DNA of 64,000 nt from Zancudomyces culisetae HAW-14-8 (GCA_052426225.1 JBNJNM010000012.1:1736001-1800000); one strand, 5' to 3'. Shown: positions 6,236 to 59,994, counted from the first letter of the stretch. Notes: generated from the sequence alone by a model not told the origin. Program-made: numbers and translations.

Positions 6236-6484
6236 TTTTGATATTCAGTTTAAAATGAGCGTTGTGTGTAGCAGATTGCTGATGCTTTATGATAATGGTT
6301 ATGCGTTTATTTTGAATCGAGGTTGTTGTTCTTGCTAGTGGATGATACGACAGGATTAGAACCGACAGAGATGAAAGCACAGGTTGGTGGGGTTGAGCTG
6401 GTGAAGCTGGTTGGTGGTGATAAACTGGTTGAAGGTGTTCAGCTGATAATTTAGTTGACCATGAGGATACTGAAATCGATAGGG

Positions 6485-19174: not shown

Positions 19175-19584
19175 TGTCAAGATCTGGAGTCAGGGGTGTT
19201 ATATTTAAATTATTAAAGTTTATTGTATGAATGTATACAAGATACTAGATACTGAATCCAAGACAGGAAAATTGTACCCTTTTTATACTTTTTTCCAGCC
19301 TTGGTTTTTGAACAAAATCACTAGAAAACTGCGGAATAGCTAAATATGCAAGCTAAAGAAAAACGTGTTTGATTACTAATCAAATTGGATTAGTAATCAA
19401 ACAAAAATCAAACTCGAATGCTAATAAAATTAAACATGTGAAAATTATTACTTAAGAAAAATTAAGAAATAATGTGAATTTTCGGTAATGTTCTAGAATG
19501 TTGGGGAACATTCTAAACATTACTGCGGAATAAAATCAAATGATTCTAGAACGTTTTCGAACATTCTAGAATCAGTTCATGACA
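19175..19584 (-). repeat. 3' LTR of element A (family B, ~410 bp)
   Basis: TG...CA ends; about 99% identical to 43133-43543 by eye. Confidence 0.95.
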
Positions 19585-22500
19585 CGACCTCCCCTCTTAA
19601 GGCTGAGCTCCGTGAAGCATTTGTGTTGGCTTTGGTTTTTCAGGATGGTGACGATGGAATTCAGTGACAAGATATTTTGCATTTGCTAAGTCAGAATATG
19701 TTTGCCAGGTACGTTCAGTGTCTGGGTATCCTTTCCAGTGTACCAGGTATTTGACAGTTCTACCAAATAGTTTACTATCTAGGATTTTTTCAACTTCATA
19801 TTCTTCTTGGCCATCAATATCTCAGGTGTAAGCCGTTTTGATGGTCTGTCTGGGATCAGATCTGGTTTACAAGTTTCAAGGAGATTGACGTGGAATACTG
19901 GGTGAATCTTCATTGTGTGTGGTAGCTGGAGTTTGTATGATCTTTGTCCAATCTTTTCCAATACTTTGAATGGACCAACTTTCCGATAGTCAAGCTTCTT
20001 GCTAGGTCTTTGAGTCCTGATGTTTTTAGTTGAGAGATAGACAAGATCAACAATGTTGAAGTCAGCTTGTGATGATACTTTTCGGTTGTAGTATTTCTCA
20101 TGGTCTTCAACGGCAAGGGATATGTTAAACTTCAGTTCTTGATGGATATCAGATAGTAGTTTGGATCTATCTGAGGAAGCAGGATTTAAAACTTGAGTAC
20201 GAGGAATTGTGACTGAGAAGCGTGGATGGAAGCCATAGTTGGCGTAGAAAGGTGTGGTCTTAGTAGAAGCATGAGATGTGTTGTTGTAGGCGAATTCGGC
20301 AATTGGTAACCACTTTGACCAATCAGTTTGTTGGTAATCAATGTAGCACCTGAGATACTGTTCCAATACAGAGTTTACGCGTTCAGTTTGTCCATCTGTC
20401 TGAGGATGGAATGCGGTGGACATTTTCTGTTCAATATTCAGTGATTTCATTAGAGTACGCATGAATGATGAATTGAACGTTACACCTCTATCAGATACGA
20501 TGTCTTTAGGGAGCTCATGTTTGCAGAAGACATGTTGGATAAACAGATCTGCAGTACCTTCAGCATCAATTTCATTGGTTGTGGGAACAAAATGCGCCAT
20601 CTTGGTAAGGCGATCCACAAATACACAGATTGCAGTAAAGTTATTGGATGGAGGTAGCTGAGTGATGAAGTCGACAGAAACAGATGACCAAGGTGAATCA
20701 GGAACGGGAAGTGGAGCGAGGTAGCCATATGGTTTATGGCGAGAGGGTTTGTTGCGTTGACAGGTATCGCAACCAGAGATGTAGTCTTTGATATATTTTC
20801 GCATGTTTGGCCAGTAAAAGTTGCGAGATACAAGCTCGTACGTCTTTGCATTTCCAAAGTGGCCGGCAGCAGGGGAATCATGGTATTCAATCAGGATAGT
20901 TCTTTTGATGTTGTCGTCCGAGGGGATACAGATTAGTCCATCATAGTGCAGAAGATTGTCAACAAGAGTGTACTTTTCATGGGAATCAGGTTTCTTGGAT
21001 AAGTCAGTGTAAATGGGTCCAAAGTACGTGTCTTTGGGTTGTAGTGACTTGATGTTGTTCATGAGCGCGGAGAACAAAGGTTCAACAGGTGTACTAGTCA
21101 TGGACTTCAAGAAGATTTCAGGAGGCAGCAAAGTTATTTTGTTTTGGTCAGTACGGGAGTCACCCCCCTTCCAAGGTTGGTCTTTCCGAGAAAGAGCGTC
21201 GGCGGCAGTGTTCTGTTTTCCAGGGCGGTACTTGATGACAAAGTTGAAGTTACTGAGGTATTCTGACCATCTGACTTGGTGGCGACTAAGATTTCTGGTA
21301 GTGGAGAAGTATTCTAAGTTTTTATGGTCGGTCATAACAACGGTTGGGTGTACAGAAAATTCAAGGTAGTGACGCCAGTGAGCAAAAGCGTCGATAATTG
21401 CTAACAGTTCCTTATCATAGATTTGATAATTCACCTCAGCAGGCAGGAGTTAGCGGGAGTAGTATGCAACAGGGTGGAGTTATCCCTCGTTGTCATACTG
21501 GCTGCAAATGGCACCTAATGCAAAATCTGATGCATCGGTTTCGATGATACAAGGCTGGTCAGGATTGTAGTGAGCTAAGACTGGGTTACTGATCATGGTT
21601 TCTTTTAGCAAGGCGAAAGCTTCTTCAGCTTTGGGTGTCCACTGGAATTGGACACCTTTTTTCAACAAGGCGGTGAGCGGCAGAGATATCTTGGAGTAGT
21701 TCAGAATAAAACGGCGGTAGAAGTTTGTAAGGCCAAGGAATACCTGAACGTCACGGACACAAGTTGGTGTCTTCCATTCGATGACGCTGGATACTTTTGA
21801 TGGATTCATAGAGATTCCGTTGGGGCCAATTACAAAACCGAGGAACTGTACTGATTGTACATCAAACTCACATTTCTCTAGCTTGAGGGTGAGATTGTGT
21901 TCCTGAAGCTTCTTCAAGACAAGGCAGACGTGATCATAGTGCTTATCGATATCATTTGAGTAGATTAACAGATCATCGATGTACACAACGAGGAATTGAT
22001 CAATGTATTCACGGAAGAGATCATTAACAAAGGACTGAAACGTGGCTGGAGCATTCATAAGGCCAAACGGCATGACCTTATACTCGAAGTGGCCGTAGCG
22101 TGTACGAAACGCGGTTTTCCATTCTTCACCAGGCGAGATCCTGATCATGTGGTATGCGGATTTCATATCCAGCTTGGTGAATATCTTGGCTTTGCCAAGC
22201 CGATCCAAGGTTTCAGAGATGAGTGGCAAGGCTGCACGGTTGGGGACAGTGATCTTATTCAGGGCTCTGTAGTCAACGCACAACCGGAGACTACCATCTT
22301 TCTTTTTTACAAATAGGACGGGAGCCCCAGCCGGGGATTCAGAGCGTTGGATAAAACCATTGGCTAGGTTTTCCTGGATGTAGTCATACAGGATCTTTAG
22401 TTCCAATTGGGAGAGGTTGTACAATGGGCCATATGAAATTTTGGAGTCAGGAAGCAAAGGAATGGTATGATCATATGGACGATGTTCAGGCAGTTTGGCA

Positions 22501-22666
22501 GATTGGGATTCAGAGAAGACAGATTCAAACATTTTATACTTTTCAGGGATTACAGGAGTCCAGGGGTTTCAGGATTAGATTCAGAGACAAGACAGAGATT
22601 TTCACAAGATTCAGGAGCTACAAGGGATTCAAGATTGTTCACGGTAATTGCACCAGCATAGACAGT
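19175..22666 (-). mobile_element. Element A: 5'-truncated, inactivated copy of chromovirus B (RT-RH-INT-chromodomain plus 3' LTR)
   Basis: Near-identical to 45349-48843 in inverted orientation. Premature TAA at 21480 and ~21450, a 1-nt deletion near 19818, and a PPT at 19585-19599. Confidence 0.95.
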
Positions 22667-22787
22667 TGTCAGGAAACTAATTTATTTAAGTTGGGTAACT
22701 TAATGTTCCCAAGTTAGGATTCTAAGGTAATTAAATATGATTAAAATTAAATATTAAAACTTATGGGTAAATAATGCGATTCTGACA
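22667..22787 (-). repeat. 3' LTR of D (121 bp)
   Basis: TGTCAG...CTGACA inverted ends, adjacent polypurine tract, and a second copy at 28580-28700. Confidence 0.92.
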
Positions 22788-23273
22788 TTATCCCCCCTTA
22801 AAGAATATTTTAAATATATAAAAATATATCTTGAACAAAATGTCATATAGTGGGCAGGAGAGCATGATGACAAATTAATTAGTCATCATGCAAACGAACA
22901 AATTATTAGTTTGCGATAACTAATGAGGATCAGTTTTTTTCACTATTGATGAAAATAACGTCATCTAGTTTTTTCTGATGACTCATAGTGTCGCAATACA
23001 AACGTTTGTTTAGTCATATAATTTTTAATAGTACTTTATTGATTTTGTATTAAAGAAGTTTAGTTATAGTATCTTAGTTTAAATTAATTTTTACATAGAA
23101 AGAATAATAGTATATTAAAGGGAAATATTTGACAAAATATAGAAAAACATACTGAAAATAATTAGTTAAAGATAAAATACTTTGTTATAGTTAATAACAA
23201 TAACTTGAAGAAATATTATAGAACAATTATAGTAAATACATATATTTTATAAATAAAATATAACAAAAAATGT

Positions 23274-23540
23274 GAGCATATAGTCGAGTGGCTAAGGCGT
23301 CGAACTTGTATTCTGCAGGACCCTGGTTCGATCCTTCGCTGTAAGACCGTAATTGGGAAGTAATTAGCTGTAGAGTGGATGTGATGTTTCACGGGGCCAA
23401 TGTGCGCGATAACGTCCTTCGGGACTAGTACCGGACCGTTTCACCTCTCCGATAACTCTTTCGGGATCTCGAGCAGTTAATTCGAATCACGTGATCGTGT
23501 GGCCCAAGACGTTAGCGCCCTCCTAAGTTCATTCTTTTTT
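23274..23540 (+). ncRNA. Putative Pol III transcript: tRNA-derived head plus conserved structured RNA module (23338-23516) and T6 terminator, antisense within the D 3' UTR
   Basis: A box TAGTCGAGTGG at 23281-23291, B box GGTTCGATCC at 23325-23334, C(UUCG)G tetraloop, G-U pairs that favour the + strand, T6 at 23535-23540, and homologs at 35579-35795 and 39240-39409. Confidence 0.7.
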
Positions 23541-23613
23541 ATTTTTTCTTTTATAATTTTTTATGCTTTTTAGTTGTTTTTAGGTTGTTTTTATAGATAT
23601 TTTTGTTAAGTAT

Positions 23614-26600
23614 TTAGGTATAATATTGGTTAAATAATAAAATATAATGTTGCTCATATGGTTTGTTGTGATATGTCTTATAGTATTTTTTCAATAGTTG
23701 AGGCGCGTTTATGTTTTCGATCGGCTCCCAGCTTCTTTCACTTATGTCAAAGCCTTTCCAATCAACTAAGTAATATTTTTTACCCCGTACAAGCTTAGAA
23801 TCCAAAATAGCCTTAACTTCAAATTCTTTATTTCCATTTATGATTAGAGGTGGAGGAGGACTGTTTATTAATCTGCGGTTACTGCTGGGTTCGATATACG
23901 GTTCCAATAACGAGACATGAAATGTGTTATGGATTTTCATTGATGGTGGGAGGTCTAAACGGACAGAAACAGGATTGATAATTTTAGAGATGGTGAAAGG
24001 GCCTAGAAGTCTATGGTCAAGCTTTTTAGAAAGCCTTTGAGTTTTGATATTTTGGCTGGATAGCCAAACCTTGTCACCTAGTTTATACTTTGGATGTTCA
24101 GATCGGTTTACATCAGCATACTTTTTATATTCCTGAGATTTCTTGTTAAGTATGGAAGTGAGGGCTGATTGAAGTTCTTTAAGTTGTTTTATCCTATCAG
24201 AAGCGCTGGGGACGTGAACGTTTTTAGTGATTTGAGGATCAAATCTTGGATGGTAACCATATAGAGCAAAGAAAGGAGAAGTGTTAGTGCTGGAGTGGAG
24301 AGTGTTGTTATAAGCAAATTCGGCAATTGGGAGCAGTTCAAACCAATTATCTTGCTGATAGTTGATGAAACAGCGTAGATACTGTTCCAATGTTTGATTT
24401 ACCCTTTCCGTTTGACCGTCTGTTTCTGGATGGAAGGCTGTAGACATCCTAGTATCAACTTTGAGCAGTTTGAATAGTGAACTCCAAAATTTGGACGAGA
24501 ATTGGGTTCCACGGTCAGAGATTATGACGTCTGGTAGTCCATGAAGCTTGAATACGTGGGTAAAGAAGGCGGAGGCAGTTTCTTCTGAGGATGGCAGCTT
24601 CTTAAGCGGGATGAAATGGCTCATTTTAGTGAACCTGTCTACAACTACCATAATAGTAGTGTGCTTGTTGGATGGAGGAAGATCAGTTATGAAATCCATG
24701 GTGATAGATTTCCATGGGCCTGAGGGAGCGGGTAGCGGAAGTAGTTTACCGTAAACTTTGTGTCTTCTGTCCTTTGATCTATTGCATGTATCACAGGTTT
24801 GAACAAACTCTTTAATAAATTTGCGCATTCCTGGAAACCAAAAGTCTCGTTCCACGAGCTCCAATGTCTTCTTAGCACCAAAATGGCCGGCTGGGCCACT
24901 GTCATGTCTAGAACTTACAACTTGCGGCTTCATTTTGTCGGGGACGACAACACGGTTTCCAAGCATTACAATCCCATCTTCAACTTCTACTGGCTCGTTA
25001 GACTTATGGCTGCTCTGGTATCTTGCGGCATCCAATAATCCTTCTAGATGGGCTTTGCTGGATTTGGCGATTTCTTGAGCAAAATCACTGTCCACTATGC
25101 TGATAATGTCTATGAAGTGGTCTTCGCCTATGATGTTGTTGTTGGCGACCTTATCAGGTGTGTGATTGGGCAAACGAGAAAGAGCGTCAGGTTTGCCTCC
25201 TTGAGATCCAGGCCTGTAGGTTATGATGAAGCTGAATCTACTGAGATCAAGAGACCACCTTGCGTGTCTTCTGTTAAGTGACTTCAGATTTTTAAAGGTC
25301 TCCAGATTCTTATGGTCAGTAAGAATCTTGAACGGGATGGAGGAGCCTTCCAGATGATGTCGCCATTCTTTGAGTGCCTTGATGATTGCCAAAAGTTCCT
25401 TGTCATAGATATTATAGTTGGATTCGGCAGTGTTGAGTTTGTAAGAGTAGTAGGCACAAGGACGGAGATCACCGTTTTCATCTTCTTGGGACAGAGCAGC
25501 CCCAATGGCGTAGTCTGAGGCGTCAGTTTCCAGAATAAACTGTTTTCCTGGGTCAGGGTATCTGAGAACGGGGGAAGTGGTGAGATCCTGGATAAGAGTA
25601 TTAAAGGCTTCACCTGCCTCCTTACTCCAAACGAACAGTGTATCCTTTTTCAGAAGTCTTGTGATTGGCAGGGCTTTCAGCGAGAAGTATGGGATAAACT
25701 TTCGGTAGTAATTGGCAAAACCGAGAAACTTCTGGACCTCCTTAACATTGGTGGGTGGTAGCCATTCTTTTACACACTTGACTTTAGCAGGATCGGTGGC
25801 TATTTCATCTGAAGACACAACATGGCCTAGAAATTCGACTTCCCTGATATGGAAGTGACATTTTTCGGCGTTACAGTACAGACCATTTTCAAGCAGCTTT
25901 TTCAGAACAGATTTCACATGATTGATGTGAGTGTCAGTGTCATTGGAAAATATCAAGATGTCGTCAAGGTATGCAATTGCATAGAGATCCAATACATCTC
26001 GTAACACATCATTGATATAGTGCTGAAAGGTGGCAGGAGCATTTGTCAAGCCAAATGGCATGACCTGGTACTCAAAGTGGCCATATCTGCACCTAAATGC
26101 AGTTTTCCACTCGTCACCTTCCTTGATCCGCACCAAGTTGTAGGCACCTTTGAGATCCAATTTTGTAAAGACCTTGGCTGTACGCAGCCGATCGAACGCC
26201 TCATCAATCCTATGTAATGGGTACCTATTCTTGATGGTAGCTTCGTTCAATCGGCGGTAGTCAACACAAAGGCGCAAGTCTCCAGACTTCTTCTTTACAA
26301 ACATGATTGGTGCACCGGCAGGGGAAACAGAGCGTCTGATGAAGCCATTGGTGAGGTTTTCACGGATGTAGCCTCTTAGAGACTCTAACTCTACTTCAGA
26401 TAGCGGGTATATTGGCCCCCAGTAAGGGGTGTAACCCTCTTTGGTGTTGACAGGACAGTCATAACGGCGGTGAGGAGGAAGTGAAACGGCAGACTTGGGA
26501 TTGAACACTTCCTTGAATTCAGAGTATATTACTGGAAGTTGCGGGAATTCTTCCAAGTACTCTAGTGGGGACTCAGAAACGGCAAAAGTTACAGGATCTG

Positions 26601-27615
26601 GATCCAAGGAATATTCTGGCTCGGGGGTGGTGACTGGGGTATTTTTATGAAATGGCCGGGATCTGACGACTGGTTCTCTTGGCTCAATTTTCTTCAGGAT
26701 TGCTTTGGGAAGTTCAGGTCTGAGTGGTACTTTTGGCACAGGGGTTACTGGACGACGGGGCTCAGGAATTTGCTTGACAACATGGTTATCTACTGGGTTC
26801 TCAATAGCTGCGGGTTTGGGCAAACTTTGGGTTTCAGGTTCTGGAGTGACTGATTGGACTGGTGCAGAAACAGGAACAGGAAGAATCTCTTCAATTCTGG
26901 CGTATGGATTTGACGGGGCTGGGCTGGGGAGATCAGGAGACGGAGGCGGTGAAAATCTTTGATTTTCAGTGTTTGAATCGTCCAATTTGACCGATTCGAG
27001 CAAATTGGCACTGTGTGGTAGCAGGGTAGTTGATAATCTATTCAACACCCTTTGGAGGATAGTTGAGTTTGTGGACGTATTCTGACTGGTATTTTGTTCT
27101 ACTGGATCTGGATCTGGTTCTGGTTCATCAGGTGACTTGATCACGGCCTGGATGGAGTGGGTATCAACACAATTTGTACTGCAAAAGTCAGAGTCGAAGT
27201 GGATCTGGAGGTCTGGCCAAGTTATACTAGGATTGTGTTTGCGTAACCAGGGTAATCCAAAAATAATGTCAGCGTGATTGGTTGGAATCGGGATAAGGTC
27301 TAGGTGTTCAGAGTGGTTAGGACCGGACTTGATATGGGCATTATCAACCTTGACATTTATGCCCCCTGGGTATATCTGGTGACCATCAACACTTTCTAGG
27401 ACAATGGTTTTTTCTGCTTGTTTGGTTGGGAGGTTTAGTTTTTCTAATAAATCTTGACGAATAAAGTTGGCTGAAGCACCGGAGTCCACTAATGCAACAA
27501 GTTCGTGTAGATTATTTAAAACAACTTTATTATGAAATTTATGACTAGAAATATTAGAATTATTTGCTACGCTCAGGAGTAACTCCCGGACTACATCTGA
27601 GCACTGTCTTTTGGC
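23614..27615 (-). CDS. pol: Pol polyprotein of D (protease, RT, RNase H, integrase, chromodomain), in the -1 frame relative to gag
   Basis: [38 protein letters not shown] and YLVDWKGF motifs. The frame is open upstream of 27489 to the gag overlap. Confidence 0.92.
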
Positions 27616-28559
27616 ACCCCAGGTATAGGGGGTCTTGGCCTGCGGAGCGGACAGTTACGGAGAATGTGGTTCGGCTGACCACAGTATAGACAAAGATTAT
27701 TGGCTAATCTTCTCTGGCGTTCGGCTGTATCTAGCGGTGCTCTTGGACGGGAGGTGACGGCATCAACGTCCATTGGTTCAGAAGTCTGGTGATCTGGGAC
27801 AGGCATGGCTGGACGGGGGAAGACCGGTGGAGCCGGAGTACTCCAGTTGCGGAATGGGACGCTTCACTTGAGCAGGTAGGCACTGCGGGCATTGATTCTG
27901 TTCTCAAGCTCAATCACCTGATCAATGAGCTGATCCAAGGTGTTTGGTAGCGGTTCAGTGGCAAGGCGCTGGACAAGGCTAGTATTCAATCCGATGTAAA
28001 ACAGGTGGATTTTGGCTGGCTCGTTGAATCCACTGAGAGAGGCGAGGTTTCTGAACTCGGTTGCAAATTCCAGGACGGAACGCTGGGACTGGCGGCAACT
28101 ATGAAGCTGGGTGATAGCTCGGGCTTGGTGGCCAGGATCTGAGAATCTCTTTTGAAATTCATTCTCAAACCCTTTGAAATCTGAGAGCAACGGCGATTGG
28201 GTATCGATAAGGTTATCGAACCACAGGGCAGCATGACCGGCAAGGTGAGAACTGATGAACCATATCTTGTTATGGTCACTCTGGAACACGTCTGGTCTGG
28301 CCCAGAACTGGCGCTTGATCTCGGCGGTGAAGGCTCGGAACCTTCCTGATTCTCCTGAGTATTTCTGGATATCTGGTATTCTGATACCATCAATCCTTGG
28401 CTGCGGATTTGCTGCAGGCAAATTCTGCAACTGACTGGGGACTTGGGCGGGTATCTGGGCTTGAGTCTGGGCTTGAGCTTGACTTTCTTGCAAAGCTTGT
28501 TGCATAGCTAATTTTGCGATCTCATCTAATTGGTGGACCATCATTAACTCTTCAACCAA
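27591..28559 (-). pseudogene. gag: gag of D with an in-frame TGA (probably CGA>TGA) at 27864-27866
   Basis: ORFs 27864-28559 and 27591-27806 are in the same frame. PMDVD motif and [14 protein letters not shown] knuckle. Confidence 0.88.
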
Positions 28560-28579
28560 TAATTAGAAGTTATCCAAAA

Positions 28580-28700
28580 TTTCAGGAAACTAATTTATTT
28601 AAGTTGGGAAACTTAAGGTTCTCAAGTTAGGATTCAAAGGTAATTTAATATGATTAAAATTAAATATTAAAACTTATGGGTAAATAATGCGATTATGACA
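28580..28700 (-). repeat. 5' LTR of D
   Basis: 7 differences from 22667-22787 over 121 bp (counted by eye). Confidence 0.9.
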
Positions 28701-29006
28701 GACCTTCCCAGATTGGGTCAAACTTGCCTCCAGGTCCACTTATTCTTTTTAATACTAAGTCTCCTTCTTTGAACTGATAACGCTTTACCACTTTGTCGTA
28801 TCTCTGCTTCATTACTGACTTTGACTTTGCGTTATTTTCCATAGCTTTTTCTCTCATCTTTGGAATACTGTTCTGCACGACTCTCATTCTCTGCAATATC
28901 TCTTTCTCTAAGTTATCAATTTCAGCCGGCGGCATCCAAGTTGATGGTGTTTGCATTTTTACACCATATAACATCTCTGATGGACTGAACCCAGTAGATC
29001 TGTTTT

Positions 29007-32000
29007 TCATTGATCTAACAACCAGTAGGGCTTTCCAAATATACTATCCCAGTTGTCTCTGTCCATTACGCATATTTTTGCTAAGACATTCTTAAATGTT
29101 CTATGAAATCTCTCGACTTGTCCGTTAGTCTGAGGCCTGAAAGCAGTAGTTGGTGTGTGTTTTATTCCCAACTGCTTGTATAACTCCGTAGTTATTTCTG
29201 ATACAAATGAACTGCCTCTGTCTGAAATTAACTGAGTTGGTACTCCAAACTCCTGTACTACCTTACTTAACAGAAATTCTACAATGGTTTCTGACTGGAA
29301 ATTTGTTACTGGTACCGCAATGGGCCACCTAGTAAAATAGTCTATCGCTGTGATGATAAATCTATTCCCAGATTTTGATATAGGGTTAATGGGTCCTACT
29401 ACATCTATACCCATGATTTGGAATGGTGCAGGCGCAATTATCGGATGCATTTCCGTTCTTCTAAATTCGCCTTCTTCATATTTTTGGCACCGTTCGCATT
29501 CTTGTACCACTTCTTCTACAATTTTACGCAAGCCTCTTCCTACATATTTATTTTTCACTCTATTGAGAGTGTTTAGAATCCCTTCGTGTCCTTCTTCATG
29601 AATTTCTCTTATCATTAACTTAGCATTGTCGCTGTGTAACACTTCTCGGATTCCTGATTCCCTAGAGTACTTGCATACTTTACCGTTTACTAGTTTATAC
29701 GGCTTTGCTCTTTTTCTTAGCTTGGCTCTGAACGCCTCATCAGCTCGTAGCGGATAGCTGAAATCTCTGAGGTAGTTCTCAATGGCTTTATGATGTAAGA
29801 CATCGATTACCATAAGTTCCTCATACTTTGTTATCTTGTTTTCCTTTTCTCCGGTCTCTAAGTTCCTGGATAAGTAATCAGTAGGATTATTTGGACCGCG
29901 GCAATGCTCCAATTCAAAGTCGTACTCTCTTAGGAACATGGCCCATCTAGCGACTCTTCCATTTAACTCTTGAGAATCAAAAACTTTTAACAATGCCATA
30001 TGGTCGGTTCGAATCTTGAACCTCTTTCCCCACAGGTAGTGCTTAAACTTTTTGACTCCCCAAACTACTGCCAATCCTTCCAAGTGTGTGATTGAGTAGT
30101 TCTGTTCATGCCTGTTGTTTGTTCTACTGGCATATGCTATGGGTCTTTCTTCCCCATTTTGTACTTGAGATAGAATTGCCCCCAATCCAATTCCAGATGC
30201 ATCCGTTGTGAGTATAAATGCCTGTTCCCAATTTGGGTGTGCCAGAGTCGGTGCTTCTGTTAGTTTTTTAATTAGTGTTTTAACCGACTCTTCACAACTT
30301 GCGCTCCAAGTCCAGGGTACGTCCTTCTTTAATAGCTCTGTAAGCGGCTTTACTATCAATGCGTATCCCTCTATAAATTTTCTGTAGTAACCTGTGAGCC
30401 CCAAGAACGATTGAATCTCTTTGACGTTCCTTGGTGCGGTTACTTTTTCCATGGCCTCTATTTTATCCTTGTTGGTAGAAATGCCATGTTTAGAGACCGT
30501 ATATCCCAGATACTTGATTTCGGTCTTTGCAAACTCACATTTTTCTTTGTGGAGTTGCACCTTGTGTTGCTTCAATAACTCAAACACTTCTCTAAGGTGT
30601 TGAGAGTGGTCTTCTGTGTTTTTTGAATAGATGATTATGTCATCTACAAACACAATAGCAAACTTCCAGAGTACTTTTGCCAGTACTCGTTCCATCATCT
30701 TTTGGAATGTTGCCGGACTATTGCATAATCCAAACGGCATTACATTATAGCAATACATACCATCACCTGGTAATGCAAACGCGGTCTTGTTTTTATCCGC
30801 GCTGTTCATACGTACCTGCCAGAATCCACTCATGGCATCGACTACACTGAATACTCCTGCTTCTCCGAATGCTGCCAGTATGTCGTCAATTATGGGTAGA
30901 AGATAAAGATCTTTTCTGGTAATCATGTTGAGTTTGCGGTAGTCAGAACAGATCCGAAGTTTTCCATTTTTCTTTTTGACTACAACTACCGGTGCACACC
31001 AGTCTGATTGACATGGCTCTATGATCCCTCTTTGTTCCATAATTTTTAGTTCTTCCCTCACCTGTTCCCTTAGGTGGTGAGCTATTCTGTATGGTCGCAC
31101 TCTTACTGGGTTTGAATCTCCAGTATCAATACTGTGTTCCAACACATTTGTTTGCTGGAGTTCTAGCAAGTCATCCACGAATATCTCTGCATACTCTTTG
31201 AGCACTTCTGCAATATTTTCTGGTAGTTTTTCTTTCTGTTCGCGGTTATCGACTTCCTTGATCATCGAGTAGTATTCATACTCGTTTGTCTGTTTTGGAC
31301 CATCTGTTTCAGTTATCATCAGTGAAACTACAACGTCCCCTTCTACCGTTGGTAAGAGCAGCTCCATGTTGCTCAAATCGATGTTGGCCTGGTGTTTCAG
31401 TAACCAATCTGCTCCCAACACCATCCTGTTTAATCCTCCTTCCATAACTACTAAATCTCCTGGGAAGATGAACCCTGCTATAACAAATGGAACATCTCTG
31501 ATTATTCCCAGTGTCTCATGCTTGGTGCCATCAGCGGTTATGAGCATTGAGTGATCTTTTTGCTCAATTTTTAAACCTAACATGTCCATAAATTGCTCTG
31601 AGATTAATGAACATGCTGCACCTGTATCAATAACTGTGAGCTGGTGCTTTCCAAATACTTCAATGTAAGCTTTGCAGTTTGTGGTGGTTGTCTTATCTTC
31701 TACAATGGTGTTCAGCTCCTTGGCTTCTATCTTCTTAAAGAGATCGACCAACTCTTTCCTGATTTCGGGTGAAGACTGTAACAGTTGACCAAGTGAAATA
31801 TCTGGTTTTAATTTATCCAACTCTGAACTTATCGAAAACTTTTGAATGTTCTCCAATAGTCTAATATCCATTTTCTTCCTAACTCTTAGGGTAGCTGGTT
31901 TGATTACTGGCCCCGTCTTGTTAGGTTCTTTTTGTGCCACACGGATTTTTGCATGAGCTGGCTGAAAATCCATGCCATTGTTTTCGTCTCTCTTACGTTT

Positions 32001-32852
32001 GTCCACTGCATAGAGTTCCGTATCTTTGTTTCCATCTGTTTTTCTTTCTATCTCTATGCAGTTAATTTCTTGTTTTTGGTCCTTCTGCCTCTTGTAGCAC
32101 GCTGCGGCCTCATGCCCTGGCCTTTTGCAGTATGTACATTCCACTTTCTTGAACGGTCTTCTTGGTTGTGGAGCAGACTTTTCAGAGTAATTGGGTCTCT
32201 TTTCTAATCTAGCTAGAAGATTAAGTGAAAGCTCGTCAAACTTTTTAATCAACGCCTCGTACATATCTGGACCCTCATTAGATTTATGTACCTTCATCAC
32301 CTTCCTACTAGTGCTTTTTGGTTTTTCTGATGTTTCCCTGACAGTAGGTAATATTTTCTCGACATCCTCTTCTGCCTGGATTATTGCTATGGCAGATTTG
32401 ACATCCTTAACTTTGGCTTTTAAAATTTGCCTTTGATACTTGGGGTTAAGAGCGTCTACAAAAAACTTAAGTCTGATCCGTTCGTCTTTAATATCGACTG
32501 TTGAGACCAGTTTGCTGAACTCCGTCTCAAAATCTTCAAAGTCGAGGTAGTCACTTTGTTTAAGGCTTTGCAGTTGATTCCACGCTCGTGCCTCTCTGTC
32601 TTTACCTTCAAACTTTTCCAGGAATTCCTCACGAACCTTTTTCCATTTTTCTAGTTTAGACTTATTGATCTTGTACCATCGAAGGTCTTTCCCCGTTAAA
32701 AACAATTCTAAGAAATCAATCTTGTCTTTTTCCATCCAGCTGTTGATCCTAGCCATTAGCTCATACCTATCGAGCCATTCTTCCACGTTTGTAGTAGTGT
32801 TGCTATCGAACATTGCTACATCTGGAATTCCTCTGTTGAACGTAAAATTCAT
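29007..32852 (-). CDS. Gag-Pol polyprotein of E (1-nt frameshift near 29045 in the integrase)
   Basis: CTYCKRPGHEAAAC knuckle, IDTGA protease, FVDD RT, TTDAS RNase H, H-x3-H...C-x2-C and GIDVVGP/SDRG/GQVER integrase motifs. Confidence 0.93.
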   Translation of the reverse strand: MNFTFNRGIPDVAMFDSNTTTNVEEWLDRYELMARINSWMEKDKIDFLELFLTGKDLRWYKINKSKLEKWKKVREEFLEKFEGKDREARAWNQLQSLKQSDYLDFEDFETEFSKLVSTVDIKDERIRLKFFVDALNPKYQRQILKAKVKDVKSAIAIIQAEEDVEKILPTVRETSEKPKSTSRKVMKVHKSNEGPDMYEALIKKFDELSLNLLARLEKRPNYSEKSAPQPRRPFKKVECTYCKRPGHEAAACYKRQKDQKQEINCIEIERKTDGNKDTELYAVDKRKRDENNGMDFQPAHAKIRVAQKEPNKTGPVIKPATLRVRKKMDIRLLENIQKFSISSELDKLKPDISLGQLLQSSPEIRKELVDLFKKIEAKELNTIVEDKTTTTNCKAYIEVFGKHQLTVIDTGAACSLISEQFMDMLGLKIEQKDHSMLITADGTKHETLGIIRDVPFVIAGFIFPGDLVVMEGGLNRMVLGADWLLKHQANIDLSNMELLLPTVEGDVVVSLMITETDGPKQTNEYEYYSMIKEVDNREQKEKLPENIAEVLKEYAEIFVDDLLELQQTNVLEHSIDTGDSNPVRVRPYRIAHHLREQVREELKIMEQRGIIEPCQSDWCAPVVVVKKKNGKLRICSDYRKLNMITRKDLYLLPIIDDILAAFGEAGVFSVVDAMSGFWQVRMNSADKNKTAFALPGDGMYCYNVMPFGLCNSPATFQKMMERVLAKVLWKFAIVFVDDIIIYSKNTEDHSQHLREVFELLKQHKVQLHKEKCEFAKTEIKYLGYTVSKHGISTNKDKIEAMEKVTAPRNVKEIQSFLGLTGYYRKFIEGYALIVKPLTELLKKDVPWTWSASCEESVKTLIKKLTEAPTLAHPNWEQAFILTTDASGIGLGAILSQVQNGEERPIAYASRTNNRHEQNYSITHLEGLAVVWGVKKFKHYLWGKRFKIRTDHMALLKVFDSQELNGRVARWAMFLREYDFELEHCRGPNNPTDYLSRNLETGEKENKITKYEELMVIDVLHHKAIENYLRDFSYPLRADEAFRAKLRKRAKPYKLVNGKVCKYSRESGIREVLHSDNAKLMIREIHEEGHEGILNTLNRVKNKYVGRGLRKIVEEVVQECERCQKYEEGEFRRTEMHPIIAPAPFQIMGIDVVGPINPISKSGNRFIITAIDYFTRWPIAVPVTNFQSETIVEFLLSKVVQEFGVPTQLISDRGSSFVSEITTELYKQLGIKHTPTTAFRPQTNGQVERFHRTFKNVLAKICVMDRDNWDSIFGKPYWLLDQ

Positions 32853-33354
32853 TTTAGAGGTATTCGGTCAGTTGTTGGTTCAGGAGTGCTCGTCTCCTGT
32901 ACTTCGACCTCCTCTGATTCATCATCAGTTGTATCCTCTCTCAACTTTTCTGCTCTTTTACTAAACATTTTGATTTTGTTGTTAAACTTTAAATAATTGA
33001 TAAATTTTTGTTATTTTGTAATTTTATAATTTTTATATTTTTATATTTTTAGGTTTAATTTTATAACAATATTTTTAATATATATTATTTTATTATAATA
33101 TGTTTTGATTATTTATTTTTTTTTATTATTATAATATTTTTGTTTTAAATTTTTAATGTATTATTATTGTTGTAGTTTGGTATTGTTTAGAAAACTTGTT
33201 AAACCGTTGAAAGTTGGATAAACTTTTAAATTTATAGGATTTAATTTCGATTTTGTTTGATTTGAAGTCTGATTTGATTTTAGTATTTCGACTCAATTAA
33301 TTTTTAAATTTTAATTTCTTTGCTGGTTTAGATTAGTTTTACTTTGTTTTAATT

Positions 33355-36150
33355 TGGACTGTGTCCCTGCTTTATATCTGCTCTGTTATTCCGACTTGTA
33401 TTCATTAAATTTAATTCCCAATTTAAGTTACCAAAAGTTCAGTCAGTTTAGAAGTGATGAACAGTTTGGGTTTGATGTTTTACCCAACTCCCGAACGGTT
33501 TGGAAGGGAGGACCTCCCCGCCCAAAAGATTGGACATCGGATTTGTTTTACCCCCATTTCATATTTCCACACTAGATCTTTCGAACGTTGGAGGGATTTA
33601 ATCTAGTGTAATAAAAGATTATTGAATATAATCTTTTCAGTATGTTTCGGTTCCGAATAATATTAACTAGAAAGTAGAAACTAGTTAAATGATATTTACC
33701 GTTCTGAAGACGCGCCGCTCTAACAGAACTCATAAGACGACAATATTGTGCATCTTACCTTGGTACCACTATTGGGTTTGGTTGAAATAAATAATAAATT
33801 CTACCTCTCCCTAGCCCCTTGGGAATGTTGAACTTACATCACCCAAATGACTGTAGAATACCTAGGAATTGACCTCCATGGTATCCTTTACTCTTGGAGT
33901 GCTTTGGCTACTCCGTAATTGGTTATACTAAGACCCCCATCTAACTTATCTATCCTTATTTTGATAGAATGGTTAGGCCGGACAAAGAGAGTAAACCAGT
34001 TCTGCTCCTGTCCCATTAATGACGTAGGTTGATTCCTGCAGGGTTATCACCTCGTAAATATTTATCTCACCTTATTAGCTACTTAAGGTGTAGAAAGGTC
34101 CCCAGAACTGAAAGTACTCTTACCACGTAGGTTGGAGGGTTTGGAATACTTCCGTTTGTTCTACCGAACCCAAGGTGTCCCTTTTTTGGGTACTACCATT
34201 TACTGACTTACTGGGTAAACTTTTTAGTTTCCCGATATTATTAGGCTGATGGCTAATAAATACTACCCCCAACCTAATACCAACTTAGTTCCATATTTTA
34301 CGGAACTTTACCACAAAATTCCTCCACCAGTTTCATTCACTCGGTTTTGGAATCGAGTATTTTATTACTCGTATAGTTTCTGGGTTAACTGGTAGGGTAG
34401 AAATTATATCCCCAGTTATTTCCTTACTTAAAACCAATTAAAGAAAAAATTATTCCTTTAAAACCACCCGAGAAGTCTGATTCAGTTTCCCTAAATCTTG
34501 AAAAAGGATTTGGATAACTAACTTCAACTTCTCAAAACTTATGAGTGTATCTGGAGATAGATACGGGATCTCCCTATTTAAAGTGTGAAGTTTATTTCTA
34601 CCTTTAAACTTCTTACACTTTTACTACTGGAGTTCAACTCCAGGTAGTTTCCCAGCAAAACTGTGGCCTAGAATAAGCTTGCATATAGCTCGCATAAACT
34701 TACCAAGTGACTTTAGTAGGTTGGTTAACTCTTACCTTCCCACTGTCACTGGTAGCTTTTCTCCACTTTAAGGATGTTATTCTTAAAGTTAGCTACAAAA
34801 TTGCCGGTCTAGTAACCTATGGTCGGGCTCCTAGACTCGGTGTAGTAAGAAAAAATTAGGATTTTTACATCCTATTATCCCCATTACTACTAGTGGCTTC
34901 CACTAAGACTAAATGGCATTGCATTTAGTCCCTAGACGCCGGTGATATGGTGTAAAACCCGCCGCAGAAATCCCCAGTACTTCTCAAAGAAGTCCGTCTC
35001 ATTTCTGTTTTGAGCCCACCTTTGGTGACTTGTGTACATGTATTTTTAGGTTACTTACACATAATTTTGCTTTTCAGCAGTAAACCCCCAGTATCCATCT
35101 TTCTTCTCCCAAGTATTGGAAGGTCTCCGTACAGCTAGCATTAACGAAAATTAACTTTCTTTAGCTATCACCGTATCTAGGAGATTTCAATATTTGGGGA
35201 ATCCAGACGAACCCGTCTCGTTTCCGCTTCCAACAAAAAATATGCTTATCGGCCTAAAAACCCATAAACATTTACCACCAACACCTGGTAAGTATCCAAA
35301 AGTATGCGACATAACGCACATTTTGCTTCAACTCCCGCAGGTAACACAGCATTTTAAGCTGTTCTGGGAAAAGTTCCCAAAGACATTTGTTGAATTTAAC
35401 TGTTTGGAAATGTTCTATTAAACTTAATTTTATCCCAAGTCCCAATTCGTTAAATTCCCCAAAAGCCTAAAAAAGAAAAGGTCGGGTAATGTGGGAAATT
35501 CAATTACATTTAGGCTAAAATGTAAATGAAACCCGAAAAAGTATTGAGAAAAATCTTAAAGGGTAAAATATATTTAAAGCCAATGTTCCTAGCCCCACTG
35601 AAAGTGTTTCGCATTTACCAGCGCGAGTCCCTAAAAGGGCTTTCGTGGTTACCTTACCTGGTCCGGTGGTTCAGAGAATTTATTCCTTATTTAAAAGGAA
35701 CAAACCTCCTACTAGCCCACATTGGTCCCAGATGATGTAAGGTCCAACTCGTCTCGTAAATGGCTTCTAGGCGACATAGCCGAAGCTTTTACGGCAAATT
35801 TTTGGTCATTAGAAAGAAAATCTTTCTGACCAAAAATTTAACTTTTCTCCCAAATTCTCCTCATACCATTCCCGGCAGAGCCCCCATTTGTTGAATTCGT
35901 TTTCATTTTTTAGTACTAGTCCAATAGGATTTTCCCAAAAAACTTCCACTAATATCAATCACGGTTCCCTAGAAGGGTGGTTATTACTGACACAGGATTT
36001 ACCATTTCTAGCCAGTTAACCACTATCTATAAAACCCCCTCGGAAAGAACACAACTGGACAATTTCCACAATTTTTGGTAAAAATAATTTTATTTAAAAG
36101 AATTCCTCCCAAAACCTGGAAAATATAGCCTAAATGGCCCTTTCCTTACA
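33355..36150 (-). ncRNA. ~2.8-kb densely structured non-coding RNA upstream of the E gag
   Basis: No ORF over 80 aa. Dozens of hairpins and long-range helices (36126-36136/35507-35517; 35454-35463/35193-35202). A-C mismatches on + become G-U pairs on -. GC-richer than its A/T-rich flanks. Confidence 0.65.
35579..35795 (-). ncRNA. Copy of the conserved RNA module inside the large E RNA
   Basis: GCCGUAA...CCUAG AAGC CAUUUAC...CUGG GACCAAU GUGG...CCAC CGGA CCAG...GUAAAUG CGAAA CACU-UUC-AGUG GGG CUAGG...UGGC. Confidence 0.7.
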
Positions 36151-36435
36151 CTAAAAAAATAGTATTACGCCTCTCTATATATGTTTATTTTTACTTTTAG
36201 TGTGGTTATGGTCGGATTTACAAATTTTTCAATTTATACTAATAATTTACTAATAAAATTGATTAAAAATAAATCCACTAATAAAGTATAAAATCGATTC
36301 GACTATAATATAAATCGATTTGTACTATTAAATTGGCTGTAAAACTGACAAAAAATTATGACATGGTCATAATTTTTGTACTCTAAATTGAATTGCGCAG
36401 GAAACAATTTTTATAAAATTGATTTCTCTGCTATT

Positions 36436-36915
36436 TGTTAGATACCAATATTATACACTATAATATTGATATTAACTAATTAACACACAGTTAATTTATA
36501 AAAGTTATTATTAATTATACTAGTTTATAACACACAGTAATAAATAAAATATCAGTTAATAATATCTTTATTATTGTTAAACGAGATTAACAAACTTAAT
36601 TGTTCATGAAAGGGATTTGTATTACCTTTTATACAATTAAGTTTGTACTAAAACTTTAATATAAACTAAAACTATCAATATAACTCTTATGAATAAACAA
36701 ATAAACTACTATCATTAATATACACGATATTAATGATGACACATTTAAATTGATCATTGTATCAATATTAATTTTTAAACTAATAATTATATAATAATTA
36801 AATAAGATAACTTAAAATTAAATACTATTAATGATAACATTATTAATTAATATTAATTAATACCATATTGTATTTTAATATACAATATTGTTATGATACA
36901 ATTGTATTCTTAACA
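36436..36915 (-). repeat. Probable 3' LTR of F (left boundary tentative)
   Basis: Starts TGTTA after the PPT, has TATAAAAGG near 36632, and ends ...CTAACA at 36436. Confidence 0.55.
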
Positions 36916-38892
36916 AGATGCCCCCATCTCGCTCACGAATCTTAAATCTTTTAAGTTTTGATTTTAAAGTTGTGGTAACATCTGGTATCATATTATTGCT
37001 TGCATAATAATTCTTTAACATATCTCCATTTACTAATTCTCGGTTTCCAAATTGATCGAATATTATGTAAGTTCCTTTATATAAAACTCTTTCGATTTCG
37101 TAAGGCCCTTCCCAATAACTTTCAAGTTTCGACCTTTCCATTTCAACTCTTTTTAAAACTTTGTCTCTAACTTTAAATTTATATAACTTGACATCCTTAT
37201 TATATTGTATCTCCATGTTCTTTTTCGATTTTACCGAATTTCTATATGCTATGCTTCGTAATTCCGGAAGATCGACTTTGAAATTCTTAATTCGACTTAA
37301 TACATTTTCTTCAATGTTTTCGATTTCACCGTTATATTTCCAGGTACTTGGTAAATGAACGTTGACAACATATAAGAGTTCCGCAGGTGTATATCCTGTT
37401 GATTAATTTTTTAAAGTTCTGATAACCAGTAAAGTTTTCCAAATAAAACAATACCAATTGTCTTTATCGTTTTTACATTGTTTTATTAAGATATTCATAA
37501 ATGTTCTGTTTAATCTTTCCACTTGACCATTACTCTGTGGTCTATAAGAAGTTGCTGGAGTATGATTAATGCCTAACCATTCGAATACATTTGTTGTTGC
37601 TTCGGAAACAAAACTTGATCCTCGATCACTTATAATCTGTTGTGGAACACCATATAATGATACTATATCATTGATTATAAAGTTGATTATCGTTTCGCTT
37701 AAAAGATTATCCACCGGAATTGCAATAGGCCATTTCGTAAAGTAATCGATTGCTGTTAATATATATCGATTTCCTGTTTTCGATATTGGTGCTATTGGTC
37801 CAATCGCATCGATTCCTATAATCTGAAAAGGTTTTGCTGCGATAATTGGTACAAGTTCGTTTCTTTTACTTTTTCCATCTTTGTATAATTGACATATGTG
37901 ACATGACTTCACAATTTCCAAAACATCCTTATATAAATTTTTTCCCGTATACTTTTCTGTAACACGCCTCCAAGTGTTCTCAATTCCTTCATGACCTTCA
38001 TTATGTATTTTCGTTACAATGTTCTTAAAATTCTTTTCGTGTAATACTTCTTTAAGATTTTTATTAACTCGTTTATATAATAATCCATTACTAATCCTGT
38101 ATTGTCTTGACTTATTTCGGATTTTCTCTCTGTCTTTATCTGATAATCCTTTAGGATACTCCATTCTTGACAAATATTGAATTATGTCAGAGTATTCTAA
38201 AACATCCATTGCTAATTTATCATGAGTTGATTCCGATTGATTATCCTCAAAATCTGATTTTAGTTCGACAATTTTTTCCTTATCCGAATTATCATTCTCG
38301 ATAATCCATCAGCGGGATTATATTTTCCAGGAAGATGTTCGATATCGTAATCGTAATTTCGTAATATCATCGCCCATCTTGCAATTCTTCCCGATAATTC
38401 TTTTCCATTAAAAATTTGCTATAATGACTTGTGATCCGTTCGAATTTTAAACTTCCTGCCCCATAAATAAAACTTAAAATTCTTTACTGCCCAGATTACT
38501 GCTAGAGCTTCCAAATGACTTATTGAGTAATTCTTTTCCGCTTTATTTGTTGTTCGACTTGCGTATTCGATTACTCTTTCGTTGCCGTCGATAAATTGAG
38601 ATAATATTGCTACAATTCCCATAACCGATGCATCTGTTGTAATTACAAATTCTTTATCCCAAACAGAAAATCCTAAAACTGGCGCAGATATTAATTTATC
38701 CTTTAATTCTTGTAAAGCATCCTCGTGTAATTTATCCCAAATCCATTTAGTATCCTTACAAAGTAGCTTTGTTAATGGACTTGGATCTTAGAGTATCCAG
38801 ATATAATTTTCCCATAATAACCAGCTAATCCAAGCACAGACTGTAATTCTTTGATATTATTGGGTGCAACAATTTTCTTAATCGATTCAATC
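36436..38892 (-). mobile_element. Element F: 3' part (RH-INT, PPT, LTR) of a decayed Ty3/Gypsy element related to E
   Basis: ORFs 38419-38622, 37403-38209 and 36875-37216 are homologous to E pol, with stops and frameshifts. PPT GAGATGGGGG precedes TGTTAAG at 36915. Confidence 0.85.
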
Positions 38893-39032
38893 TGTAACAG
38901 AACGAGATTTATTGAATAAACAAGTTGTAATTCTTATACTATTACAACGAAGCATAAACGAAATCATTAAATAGAACATAAAATATTAAGATTAATTATG
39001 GGTAATAAGAATTAATATTATTGGCTATAACA
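38893..39032 (-). repeat. 3' LTR of C (140 bp)
   Basis: TGTTA...TTACA ends next to the PPT; homologous to the solo LTR at 40611-40750. Confidence 0.88.
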
Positions 39033-39233
39033 TTGTCCCCCTCCAAAGTAGTATTAAAAGTTTACTTTGATACTATATTTTAATTTGTGGTTTTTTATAA
39101 TAATAATTATAGATAATTATATTATTTTTTTTATATTGTTTTGATTAGATATAATTTTTAGTTAATAATATATTGTTATATATTATAATATATAACTATC
39201 GGATTTTGGGAAATTTGACTTTGCATTTTTTAA

Positions 39234-39478
39234 TCAAAATCAACGTTGAGAGACACACCATTCGATGATTCGCGAATCAGTACCGGCTTCCTAAAGGAAA
39301 TTTAGAAGAGGTGGGAGGCTCCGGTGCTCGCTTTCACTTGCGCAAATTGGCCGCCTATAGCCCCACATTCTCACCAGCTGATTTGTCTTCTTCCTGACGA
39401 TCTTACAGCAAACTCTCTTTAATTTTAAGCGAGTTGGTTCGATTTTAATTTTTCATTTTGTCAGGGGGAAGTTGGCAT
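39234..39478 (-). ncRNA. Copy of the conserved RNA module (core 39240-39409) in the C 3' UTR, sense orientation
   Basis: GCUGUAAGAUCGU...AAUCAG/CUGAUU, GUGGG/CCCAC, AGGC-GGCCAAU...CGGA-GCCU, GAAA tetraloop, CGAAU-CAUC/GGUG. Confidence 0.68.
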
Positions 39479-40610
39479 ATTTATACTTTTTTAAAAATTT
39501 TGAAAATTTTGAAATTTTTTTTCAAAATTTTTTTCGGTTATGGGTAAATTTTGTTTAATTATGATTTTGATTATGATTTTGATTTTGATTTTGCTTTTGA
39601 TTTTGATATATTTATTTTTTTTTTTTTTTTTTTTGAGTTAAATTTTTCAAAACTTCTTTAATTTTGTTAGGATAATTTTCATGAAATTTTTTCGCAATCG
39701 CTCAACGGATATGTTTCAATTGGCTCCCAAGTTCTTTCGGTGATGTCGTATCCTTTCCAATGTACTAAATAGTATTTTTTATTTCTTCAATTTCGTATTC
39801 TTGTTCATTGTTGACGATTATTGGTTCAGGAGGTTCGGGAAAAACAGAATTTGTAGGCGGTATGTATTTATCCAATAGTGAAACATGAAAGACTGGGTGA
39901 ATTTTCATAGAGGCGGGGAGGTCAAGTTTGTAAACTAAATCACTAAGCTTTTCTTTAATTTTGAATGGTCCAATTTTCTTATAGTCAAGTTTTTTACTAG
40001 GCCTAGTAGTCTGAATATTCTTTGTTAGAAGCCAAACTTTTTCACCTATAGTATATTCAGGATTTTTTCTTCTTTTCTTGTCTGCAGATTTTTTGAATGT
40101 TGAAGAAGCGAGAGTGATTTGCCTATTGGTTTCTTTCCAAATATGATGGATTTGGTTGATTCTTTCTTCCACAAAAGGCATAACATGGCTATTGATTAAA
40201 GGTGGATCAAAGCGTGGGTTAAACCCGTAGTTAATGAAGAACGGGGATGATCCAGTAGATTCGTGAGTAGAGTTGTTGTAGGCAAATTCTGCCAATGGCA
40301 GAAGATCTGTCCAATTATCTTGTTGATATGACAAAAAACAACGGAGATACTGTTCCAGAGTCTGATTTACTCTTTCAGTTTGTCCATCAGTTTCAGGATG
40401 GAACGCTGTTGAGAGCTTAATTTTGACACCTAAAGTGTTGAAAAGAGCTTTCCAAAACTTTGATGCAAACTGAGAGCCTCGATCAGAGATGATCTCTTCA
40501 GGTAAACCGTGGAGTCTGATGATGTTATTGAGGATGATTTCAGAAGTTTCCATAGATGAAGGCAGTTTCTTTAGTGTTATAAAATGGCTCATTTTACTGA
40601 ACCGATCTAC

Positions 40611-40750
40611 TGTCATGGCCAATCAGGTGACATCTAACCTCCCATAACATTTATTCTAATATTTACTTAGTATTTAATTAATAACATTTGCCTATCTGTA
40701 ATTCCTTAAGAATTACAACCTGTTTAACTAATAAAACTCGTTCTGTGACA
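40611..40750 (+). mobile_element. Solo LTR (140 bp) of a sister family of C, inserted in the C integrase
   Basis: TGTCA...TGACA ends with a perfect 5-bp TSD TCTAC (40606-40610 and 40751-40755). Confidence 0.93.
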
Positions 40751-43545: not shown

Positions 43546-43554
43546 ATACTAGAT
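43546..43554 (+). promoter_or_regulatory. Self-priming-type primer-binding site of B
   Basis: ATACTAGAT is the reverse complement of ATCTAGTAT at 43467-43475, ~30 nt downstream of TATAAAA (43430-43436). No TGG tRNA-type PBS is present. Confidence 0.65.
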
Positions 43555-43603
43555 CAAAATATTATATTTATTATTTTCTGAAACCAGCCTAAGTATTTTA
43601 ACC

Positions 43604-44824: not shown

Positions 44825-44862
44825 ACAGTAAGGGACACCTATTGGGCAACTTAGCCAGTCCC
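44803..44862 (+). promoter_or_regulatory. -1 ribosomal frameshift signal of B: G_GAA_AAC plus H-type pseudoknot
   Basis: Heptamer at 44803-44809 in gag phase, 6-nt spacer, stem 1 GCCCAGTAG/CTATTGGGC, stem 2 GGGAC/GTCCC. Pol is in the -1 frame. Confidence 0.8.

Positions 44863-59905: not shown

Positions 59906-59994
<89 letters not shown>

Follow-up and report, generated by a model that had tools for sequence, protein, structure and literature searches.

In a stretch of 64,000 nucleotides from the insect-gut fungus Zancudomyces culisetae HAW-14-8 (GCA_052426225.1, JBNJNM010000012.1:1736001-1800000), three segments lying among long terminal repeat (LTR) retrotransposons are copies of one previously undescribed structured RNA family. 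The copies, termed modules D, E and C after their host elements, measure about 170-220 bases each and are all found inside 16 kb of this stretch, the whole of which is called the window below. Modules D and E were shown to be internal to their elements, and residence in the 3' tail of a retrotransposon was shown for two lineages and is probable for a third. From the sequence, the module is tentatively proposed to be an undescribed retrotransposon-borne accessory RNA, a passenger or helper that would act as a discrete folded RNA, a proposal that could well be right but is advanced with reservation. The usual view of LTR retrotransposons gives them no cargo beyond gag, pol and short cis signals; were the proposal true, an RNA "accessory gene" would join the repertoire of autonomous retrotransposons, and the theme of the Cassandra and Helenus elements would be widened from promoter capture to a selected RNA product. 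The family also represents a structured RNA class missed by Rfam-based annotation and sequence aligners alike, and offers testable putative protein-binding motifs.

One fold in three divergent copies

Module identity amounts to 57% between D and E, the closest pair, and to 50-52% between C and either of the others, values that, on the sequences at hand, represent a floor set by the invariant positions at which vertical descent and lateral exchange are indistinguishable. The motifs GCYGUAARA, AAG, GRCCAAUNUGNGC, ACCGGA, CGAAWCAY and AACRUUR occur in this order, once each per copy, in all three modules, and their combination was not found elsewhere in the 64-kb window. An initial annotation of the DNA had proposed that these segments form one structured RNA family with compensatory helices; its segments were confirmed at the positions and on the strands of Table 1, and all seven helices that it listed are present at homologous positions in the three copies. 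For D, C and E respectively, the pairing strings located are UUGGG/CCCAA, GGAAG/CUCUC (imperfect) and CCUAG/CUAGG in helix 1; AAUUAG/UUAAUU, AAUCAG/CUGAUU and CAUUUAC/GUAAAUG in helix 2; GGA/UCC, AGAA/UUCU and UGG/CCA in helix 3; GUGA/UCAC, GUGGG/CCCAC and CCUUAC/GUAAGG in helix 4; ACGG/CCGU, AGGC/GCCU and CUGG/CCAG in helix 5; UCU-UUCG-GGA, UUCC-UUUA-GGAA and CCC-UUUUA-GGG in helix 6; and CACG/CGUG, CAUC/GGUG and CACU/AGUG in helix 7. Pairs are canonical throughout these helices save for a single A.C in helix 1 of E.

Further stems were added to this set. A terminal stem, GCYG/YRGC, reads GCUG/UAGC in D and GCCG/UGGC in C, a compensatory change, and is weaker in E, where three of its four pairs form, with wobbles. 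A second added stem, YGU/ACR, is CGU/ACG in D and E as against UGU/ACA in C, and a third, UGS/SYA (UGC/GUA, UGC/GCA and UGG/CCA), closes the apical part beyond the GRCCAAU/ACCGGA internal loop. The module limits first drawn coincide with the ends of the terminal stem, and the ends that had been called invariant are actually paired, so that the module is a closed rod. Read from its base, this rod comprises the terminal stem, the UAARA loop, helix 1 and a first three-way junction, where helices 1, 2 and 7 meet and which AAG, CGAAW and KGK line; beyond it come a second junction (helices 2, 3 and 6) and a long arm that holds the invariant internal loop and a bulge of 5-6 nt and is capped by a hairpin that is free in length and sequence (14-47 nt). 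The apical loops of this arm are unlike among the copies (UUCG in D, AAGUGAAA in E and a 47-nt insert in C), and those of helix 6 vary as well (UUCG, UUUA and UUUUA). Conservation was shown to end sharply at the terminal stem pairing both RNA ends: the flanks of the three copies bear no similarity to one another, the upstream sequence differing in each as had been claimed, and the modules stand as islands of 46% GC between flanks of 16-25% GC.

Statistical support came from the covariance-model test suggested alongside the initial annotation. A model of 31 base pairs built from D and E only, with helix 2 omitted since MAFFT had put it out of register, matched C at 46.8 bits (E=9.6e-10 in the 64-kb window). 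A sequence-only model of the same D/E alignment missed C even at E<=10, and C is therefore recognisable only via the shared fold. No fourth copy was detected by the covariance model in the 64 kb, nor with filters off over the unannotated 9.4-19.2 kb. In the model-fitted alignment, 94.6% of 93 cells were paired and 16 of the 31 pairs showed double-sided change, a level reached on any pairing measure by none of 500 shuffles; in the control, sliding the 3' partners by 1-3 columns left 36-46% of cells paired and 1-5 double-sided pairs. RNAalifold applied to a hand-anchored alignment returned 43 consensus pairs, 22 of them with double-sided change, at z=-11 versus column shuffles, a generous value for an alignment adjusted by eye; both structural alignments were made to fit the structure and hold only three sequences, all from one genome. 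A plain MAFFT alignment recovers helices 1 and 6 only, because C carries the 47-nt apical insert, and the minimum free energies of single sequences are unremarkable (z-scores of +1.3 for D and +2.0 for E, no better than shuffles). Taken across the three copies, the fold is shown to be maintained by selection while its helices are rewritten.

The relative orientation of the copies is set by sequence homology itself, D on the plus strand aligning with E and C on the minus strand. As for the absolute strand, held at the outset to be fixed by UUCG loops and G-U pairs, five G-U cells against one A.C cell and the presence of UUCG loops in three variable hairpins speak for the proposed strand, whereas the alifold energies are near-equal on the two strands (-37.8 proposed, -36.9 opposite).

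The carrier elements and the polymerase III-like unit of copy D

The modules lie in a nest that spans window 19-50 kb (19174-50000) and consists of A', D, C1, C2, E and A, five or six Ty3/gypsy elements bearing Tf1/sushi-type domains. In this nest D is inserted in the integrase of C1, E interrupts C2, and A splits E (Table 1). Carriage of the module by LTR retrotransposons in either orientation agrees with the first description; that its carriers are three different families holds in part, for the hosts of D and E are sister lineages (71% amino-acid identity in reverse transcriptase (RT)), whereas the host of C is distant, its pol being 34% identical to that of D. Element A is nearer to D in pol (48%) than C1 is (34%) and has no module, only 11 bp separating its pol stop from its LTR.

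Element D is the sole element with both open reading frames (ORFs) uninterrupted (gag of 231 aa and pol of 1291 aa). Its module lies between the pol stop and the polypurine tract (PPT), antisense to the host, and the PPT and the pair of 120-bp LTRs bracket both the pol ORF and the module. Module E occupies the same slot in the opposite orientation, 269 nt past the pol stop and 195 nt before the PPT, internal to element E and sense to it; this element is broken up and is split by A.

Directly upstream of module D lies a decayed tRNA-derived leader in which no tRNA was called by ARAGORN at its default setting or matched by the Rfam tRNA model; at a relaxed threshold only, ARAGORN reported a pseudo-tRNA at 23277-23348. 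The leader holds A-box- and B-box-like matches 44 nt apart on the strand of module D, and such patterns match only 4 and 6 times, respectively, on both strands of the whole window. With T6 runs 19 nt beyond the terminal stem, the leader, module and terminator-like runs are arranged, to judge by their sequence, like a polymerase III unit whose promoter is a tRNA-derived leader, as found in the heads of short interspersed nuclear elements (SINEs). The idea that the unit serves as the element's own primer gained nothing from a comparison with the region after the 5' LTR of D, to which leader and module are complementary over 8 nt at most and not at the boundary. By eye, AAGTTACCCAAC inside the D LTR (22668-22787) is nearly complementary to TTTTGGATAACTT after the 5' LTR (28535-28600), which would fit Tf1-style self-priming of this element, as opposed to tRNA priming.

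The placement of module C differs from that first given. It had been assigned to a 5' leader, but 2.6 kb separate it from the C1 gag start downstream, with about 2.2 kb of non-coding DNA between, and it lies 1079 nt downstream, on the same strand, of the pol stop of C2, a fragment of another C-like element, and is thus probably located in a 3' tail. This placement is only probable because no C-type LTR ends were found, either for C1 or for C2. The simplest reading is that all three copies fit one position, the 3' tail after pol. An ambiguous similarity to D of primer-binding-site type, TTTTGGTAACTT, occurs at ~33420-33440 upstream of C1 gag, and an inverted repeat with a 13-nt stem (TTTTTGGTCA...TGACCAAAAA) at 35800-35845 ends 3 nt before module C. 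Very AT-rich tracts (9-25% GC) stand between the modules and the PPTs or pol stops at 22840-23270, 36200-36875 and 39045-39240; their similarity, mutually and to 33005-33170 and 12306-12587, is of low complexity only.

Table 1. Positions of the modules, their host elements and associated features in the window.
Feature	Position	Strand	Remarks
Module D	23338..23516	+	179 nt; terminal stem, two three-way junctions, long arm with GGCCAAU/ACCGGA internal loop
Module E	39240..39409	-	170 nt; sense to host element E
Module C	35579..35795	-	217 nt; same fold plus extra UUCG hairpin in 5' loop and 47-nt apical insert
tRNA-derived leader	23277..23337	+	directly 5' of module D; too decayed to be tRNA
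A-box-like TAGTCGAGTGG	23281-23291	+	pattern match in leader
B-box-like GGTTCGATCCT	23325-23335	+	pattern match in leader; ends 3 nt before module D
T6 runs	23535-23540 and 23542-23547	+	polymerase III terminator-like; 19 nt past terminal stem of module D
Element D	22668-28700	-	Ty3/gypsy, ~6 kb, gag-pol
3' LTR, element D	22668..22787	-	120 bp, TGTCAG...CTGACA
PPT, element D	22788..22799	-	AAGGGGGGATAA, abuts 3' LTR
pol ORF, element D	23614..27489	-	protease-RT-RNaseH-integrase-chromodomain; stop 23614-23616, 97 nt from module
5' LTR, element D	28581-28700	-	95% identical to 3' LTR
C-terminal integrase ORF, fragment C2	36875..37216	-	GPY/F-type motif WEGPYEI; stop 36875-36877
Integrase, fragment C2	37403-38209
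RNase H, fragment C2	38419-38622
3' LTR, element E	38893..39032	-	140 bp, TGTTAT...GTTACA
PPT, element E	39033..39044	-	GGAGGGGGACAA
Stop codon, chromodomain end of element E pol	39679..39681	-
Related D/E-type solo LTR	40611-40750	inverted	inside element E integrase
Element A	43132-48843		412-bp LTRs
Truncated twin of A (A')	19174-22666

A proposed accessory RNA among known RNAs and competing explanations

The claim that the module belongs to no known family was upheld by a search of Rfam 15, whose 4227 models include tRNA, 5S, signal recognition particle (SRP) RNA, RNase P/MRP, small nuclear RNAs, Y and vault RNAs and the self-cleaving ribozymes. At the gathering threshold there was no match in the whole window; at E<=10, none was found in the module D region (23100-23700), and four matches only, at E of about 4-8 and far under gathering, in 35300-39700. 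One of these four, to mir-4510, overlaps the C apical insert (35658-35730) at 17.6 bits against a gathering value of 60. Set by eye against consensus features, the module has no tandem G.A pairs of the kink-turn and does not fit the hammerhead, hepatitis delta virus (HDV)-like or hairpin-ribozyme cores or the conserved regions of RNase P/MRP. Short words shared with 5S rRNA were discounted, as the helices of the module do not correspond to those of 5S rRNA, the Rfam model of which gave no match. The functions first suggested for it, namely a ribozyme, a decoy or an SRP-like RNA, gained no support from any test run. Relatives were sought with a motif-pattern scan, which returned one locus in IMG/VR and 89 stretches in JGI metagenomes, about the number expected by chance, and the covariance model found no homologue among the viral locus and 80 of the 89 metagenome stretches. 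Two small metagenome elements related to the window's pol contain no module. Identity to the nearest pol relatives, which stem from metagenomes or large animal genomes, does not exceed 57%, and no record of the window's retrotransposon proteins was found on GCA_001969505.1; long-read assemblies of Z. culisetae exist (PMC12611240).

Under the accessory-RNA proposal, Ty3/gypsy (Tf1/sushi-like) elements of Z. culisetae would carry the module between the pol stop and the PPT as a discrete, protein-binding RNA, with the invariant unpaired motifs as its putative surfaces: the UAARA loop, the AAG/CGAAW/KGK lining of the first three-way junction and the GRCCAAU/ACCGGA internal loop. In E, and probably in C2, the module would be transcribed within the element's own RNA, while in D the inverted module would be driven by the A and B boxes of the decayed tRNA and end at the T6 runs, yielding a predicted transcript of about 270 nt. 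Because the only element whose gag and pol frames are intact (D) carries the module antisense with its own putative promoter, the RNA may act without the need for one fixed cis linkage or orientation to the element messenger. Candidate roles for the element would be help with RNA export, stability or packaging, or interference with host defence.

Several observations weigh against this proposal. The family is known from three copies only, with no homologue found beyond the window, and the strand assignment of the fold is only moderately supported. The case for an autonomous RNA is made by one copy, D; two of the three copies are sense and possibly a plain cis element of the element RNA. The initial annotation had favoured portable cargo over a cis signal of the untranslated region (UTR), of which the carriage and the portability in orientation stood, whereas the preference for cargo over cis turns on D. 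No polymerase III promoter was recognised upstream of E or C, where ARAGORN was negative and nothing aligned to the D leader; module C holds two internal U4 runs. Downstream, the T runs are T4 only for E and T4 then T5 for C. Element D itself may be recombinant or rearranged, and not an active copy, because its LTRs are just 95% identical and have no matching target-site duplications, in which case its inverted module is possibly an accident.

The closest competitor is a purely cis 3'-UTR element of export, packaging or stability type, functional in the sense orientation only, of which D would be an inverted non-functional derivative; this is considered unlikely, though not markedly so. The constitutive transport element (CTE) of Mason-Pfizer monkey virus (MPMV) and, in the intracisternal A-particle (IAP), its RNA transport element (RTE) are post-transcriptional elements of this kind in the 3' untranslated region (PMC1363727); the module resembles them in being structured, in size (about 150-230 nt), in lying after the last ORF and ahead of the 3' LTR, and in having conserved internal loops and variable helices. 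The likeness is one of position and shape, no similarity of sequence or model being established; E fits the sense slot, C likely does so relative to C2, and D, being antisense, does not. In keeping with a cis element, all three copies lie past a pol stop, D and E before a PPT, E and C are sense, and a rod in which the internal loops are conserved while the helices are rewritten is a shape that such an element might have; moreover, the sister hosts D and E carry the closest pair of modules (57% versus 50-52%), as vertical co-inheritance predicts. Yet the copy in the sole element with intact ORFs is antisense, with all pairs canonical and no A.C, its A and B boxes and T6 runs are correctly oriented, a feature not readily expected of a dead inversion, and a unit that is antisense with its own putative promoter is something that a cis export element cannot be. 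Element A, closer to D than C is (48% versus 34%), nonetheless has no module. An independent SINE-like polymerase III retroposon that landed in AT-rich tails, the association being one of target preference, is improbable. The layout of D, with its tRNA-related head, unrelated body and T-run, is classic for such an element, both orientations are present, the boundaries are sharp, and Cassandra, Helenus and Ajax have been proposed to originate from SINEs inserted into LTR elements (PMC10886601). A SINE insertion was rejected, as no copy has target-site duplications or an A-rich tail, the flanking direct repeats being AT-rich, of 8-9 nt at most and at non-corresponding distances; E and C, which lack the head with A/B boxes seen in D only, begin at the exact first nucleotide of the D body, unlike a random 5' truncation; 50-57% identity with compensatory change is unlike a recently amplified family; and the window's 30 kb of non-retrotransposon DNA hold no copies. 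Cassandra, Helenus and Ajax (TRIMp3) are themselves LTR retroelements whose polymerase III units stem from 5S or tRNA genes (PMC10886601; PMC7215508). Like them, D is an LTR element with a putative polymerase III promoter that goes back to a small-RNA gene, here its decayed-tRNA boxes, and the unit travels along. The TRIMp3 unit, however, is an LTR component that acts as promoter for tiny non-autonomous elements, whereas that of D lies in the 3' tail, antisense in an autonomous gag-pol element, and would give a predicted separate 179-nt RNA with a selected fold, and E and C have no recognisable promoter of this type. Membership of TRIMp3 was rejected because the boxes of D (23281-23335) are internal to the element, at a distance of 490 bp from its LTR.

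Slightly less probable again is a captured host polymerase III small-RNA gene that is too divergent for Rfam, after the manner of the 5S of Cassandra. Cellular polymerase III RNAs typically have such a terminal stem and T-run; fungal SRP RNAs have previously escaped standard models (PMC4605306); and the 5' UGUAA of D and E resembles the UGUNR of the SRP Alu domain, a likeness to the SRP Alu domain and Alu/B1 SINEs that extends to the compensatory upkeep of a fold across dispersed copies. Hallmarks of SRP RNA are symmetric and asymmetric internal loops and a helix 8 whose apical loop is conserved and of GNAR type (PMC4605306). SRP RNA was rejected here: the module's apical loops are not conserved, no GNAR tetraloop, AGCA-type loop or helix 8 with its loops is present, nor is a loop pair of helices 3 and 4. 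The UGUAA motif, which is CGUAA in C, sits in the 5' internal loop beside the terminal stem and not between helices 3 and 4. No Rfam family, SRP included, corresponds to the module even at E<=10, and no free-standing copy occurs in the window. Ribozymes are found in retroelements, with HDV-like examples in R2 and L1Tc and hammerheads in retrozymes and Penelope-like elements. That the module is such a ribozyme, cleaving itself and thereby processing the element RNA at a conserved UUY|G boundary, is very improbable, in spite of the unpaired conserved nucleotides at the junctions and the UUY that precedes the first G in all three copies: no Rfam ribozyme model matches at E<=10, the helix order, by eye, is unlike that of the hammerhead, HDV-like and hairpin cores, and a cut upstream of the PPT and 3' LTR would ruin the template of E and C. 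Adenovirus virus-associated (VA) RNA and the Epstein-Barr virus (EBV)-encoded small RNAs (EBERs) are virus-encoded polymerase III small RNAs whose genes have internal A and B boxes. The module is like them in being a highly structured RNA of about 160-180 nt with a terminal stem and a T-run terminator that is carried by a mobile parasite and presumed to act in trans; it is unlike them in that its boxes stand in an upstream leader and in one copy only, and a functional parallel would be a putative one. An extension of the accessory-RNA proposal by this analogy, whereby a fungal LTR lineage would encode a polymerase III-expressed, trans-acting small RNA of VA/EBER type that is selected and shared or exchanged between Ty3/gypsy lineages 34% identical in pol, is doubtful.

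Surroundings of the retrotransposon nest

The nest is flanked by two host genes. One, at window 144-2249, encodes an ABC half-transporter, of which an 826-aa protein is on record for GCA_001969505.1 (LSSK01000749.1), and the other, at window 54143-62230, is an uninterrupted 2695-aa ORF for an SNF2/CHD helicase with a Mit1-like chromodomain. A coding tandem array with a 9-nt period and about 227 units extends over window 6430-9300 within a 939-aa ORF (6485-9304, minus strand), for which Pfam gives only low-complexity glutenin-like and histidine-rich matches. Beside the 5' end of element E, two 128-bp direct repeats that are 81% identical (50092-50217 and 51409-51536) lie 1.3 kb apart and could represent LTRs belonging to a small non-autonomous element.

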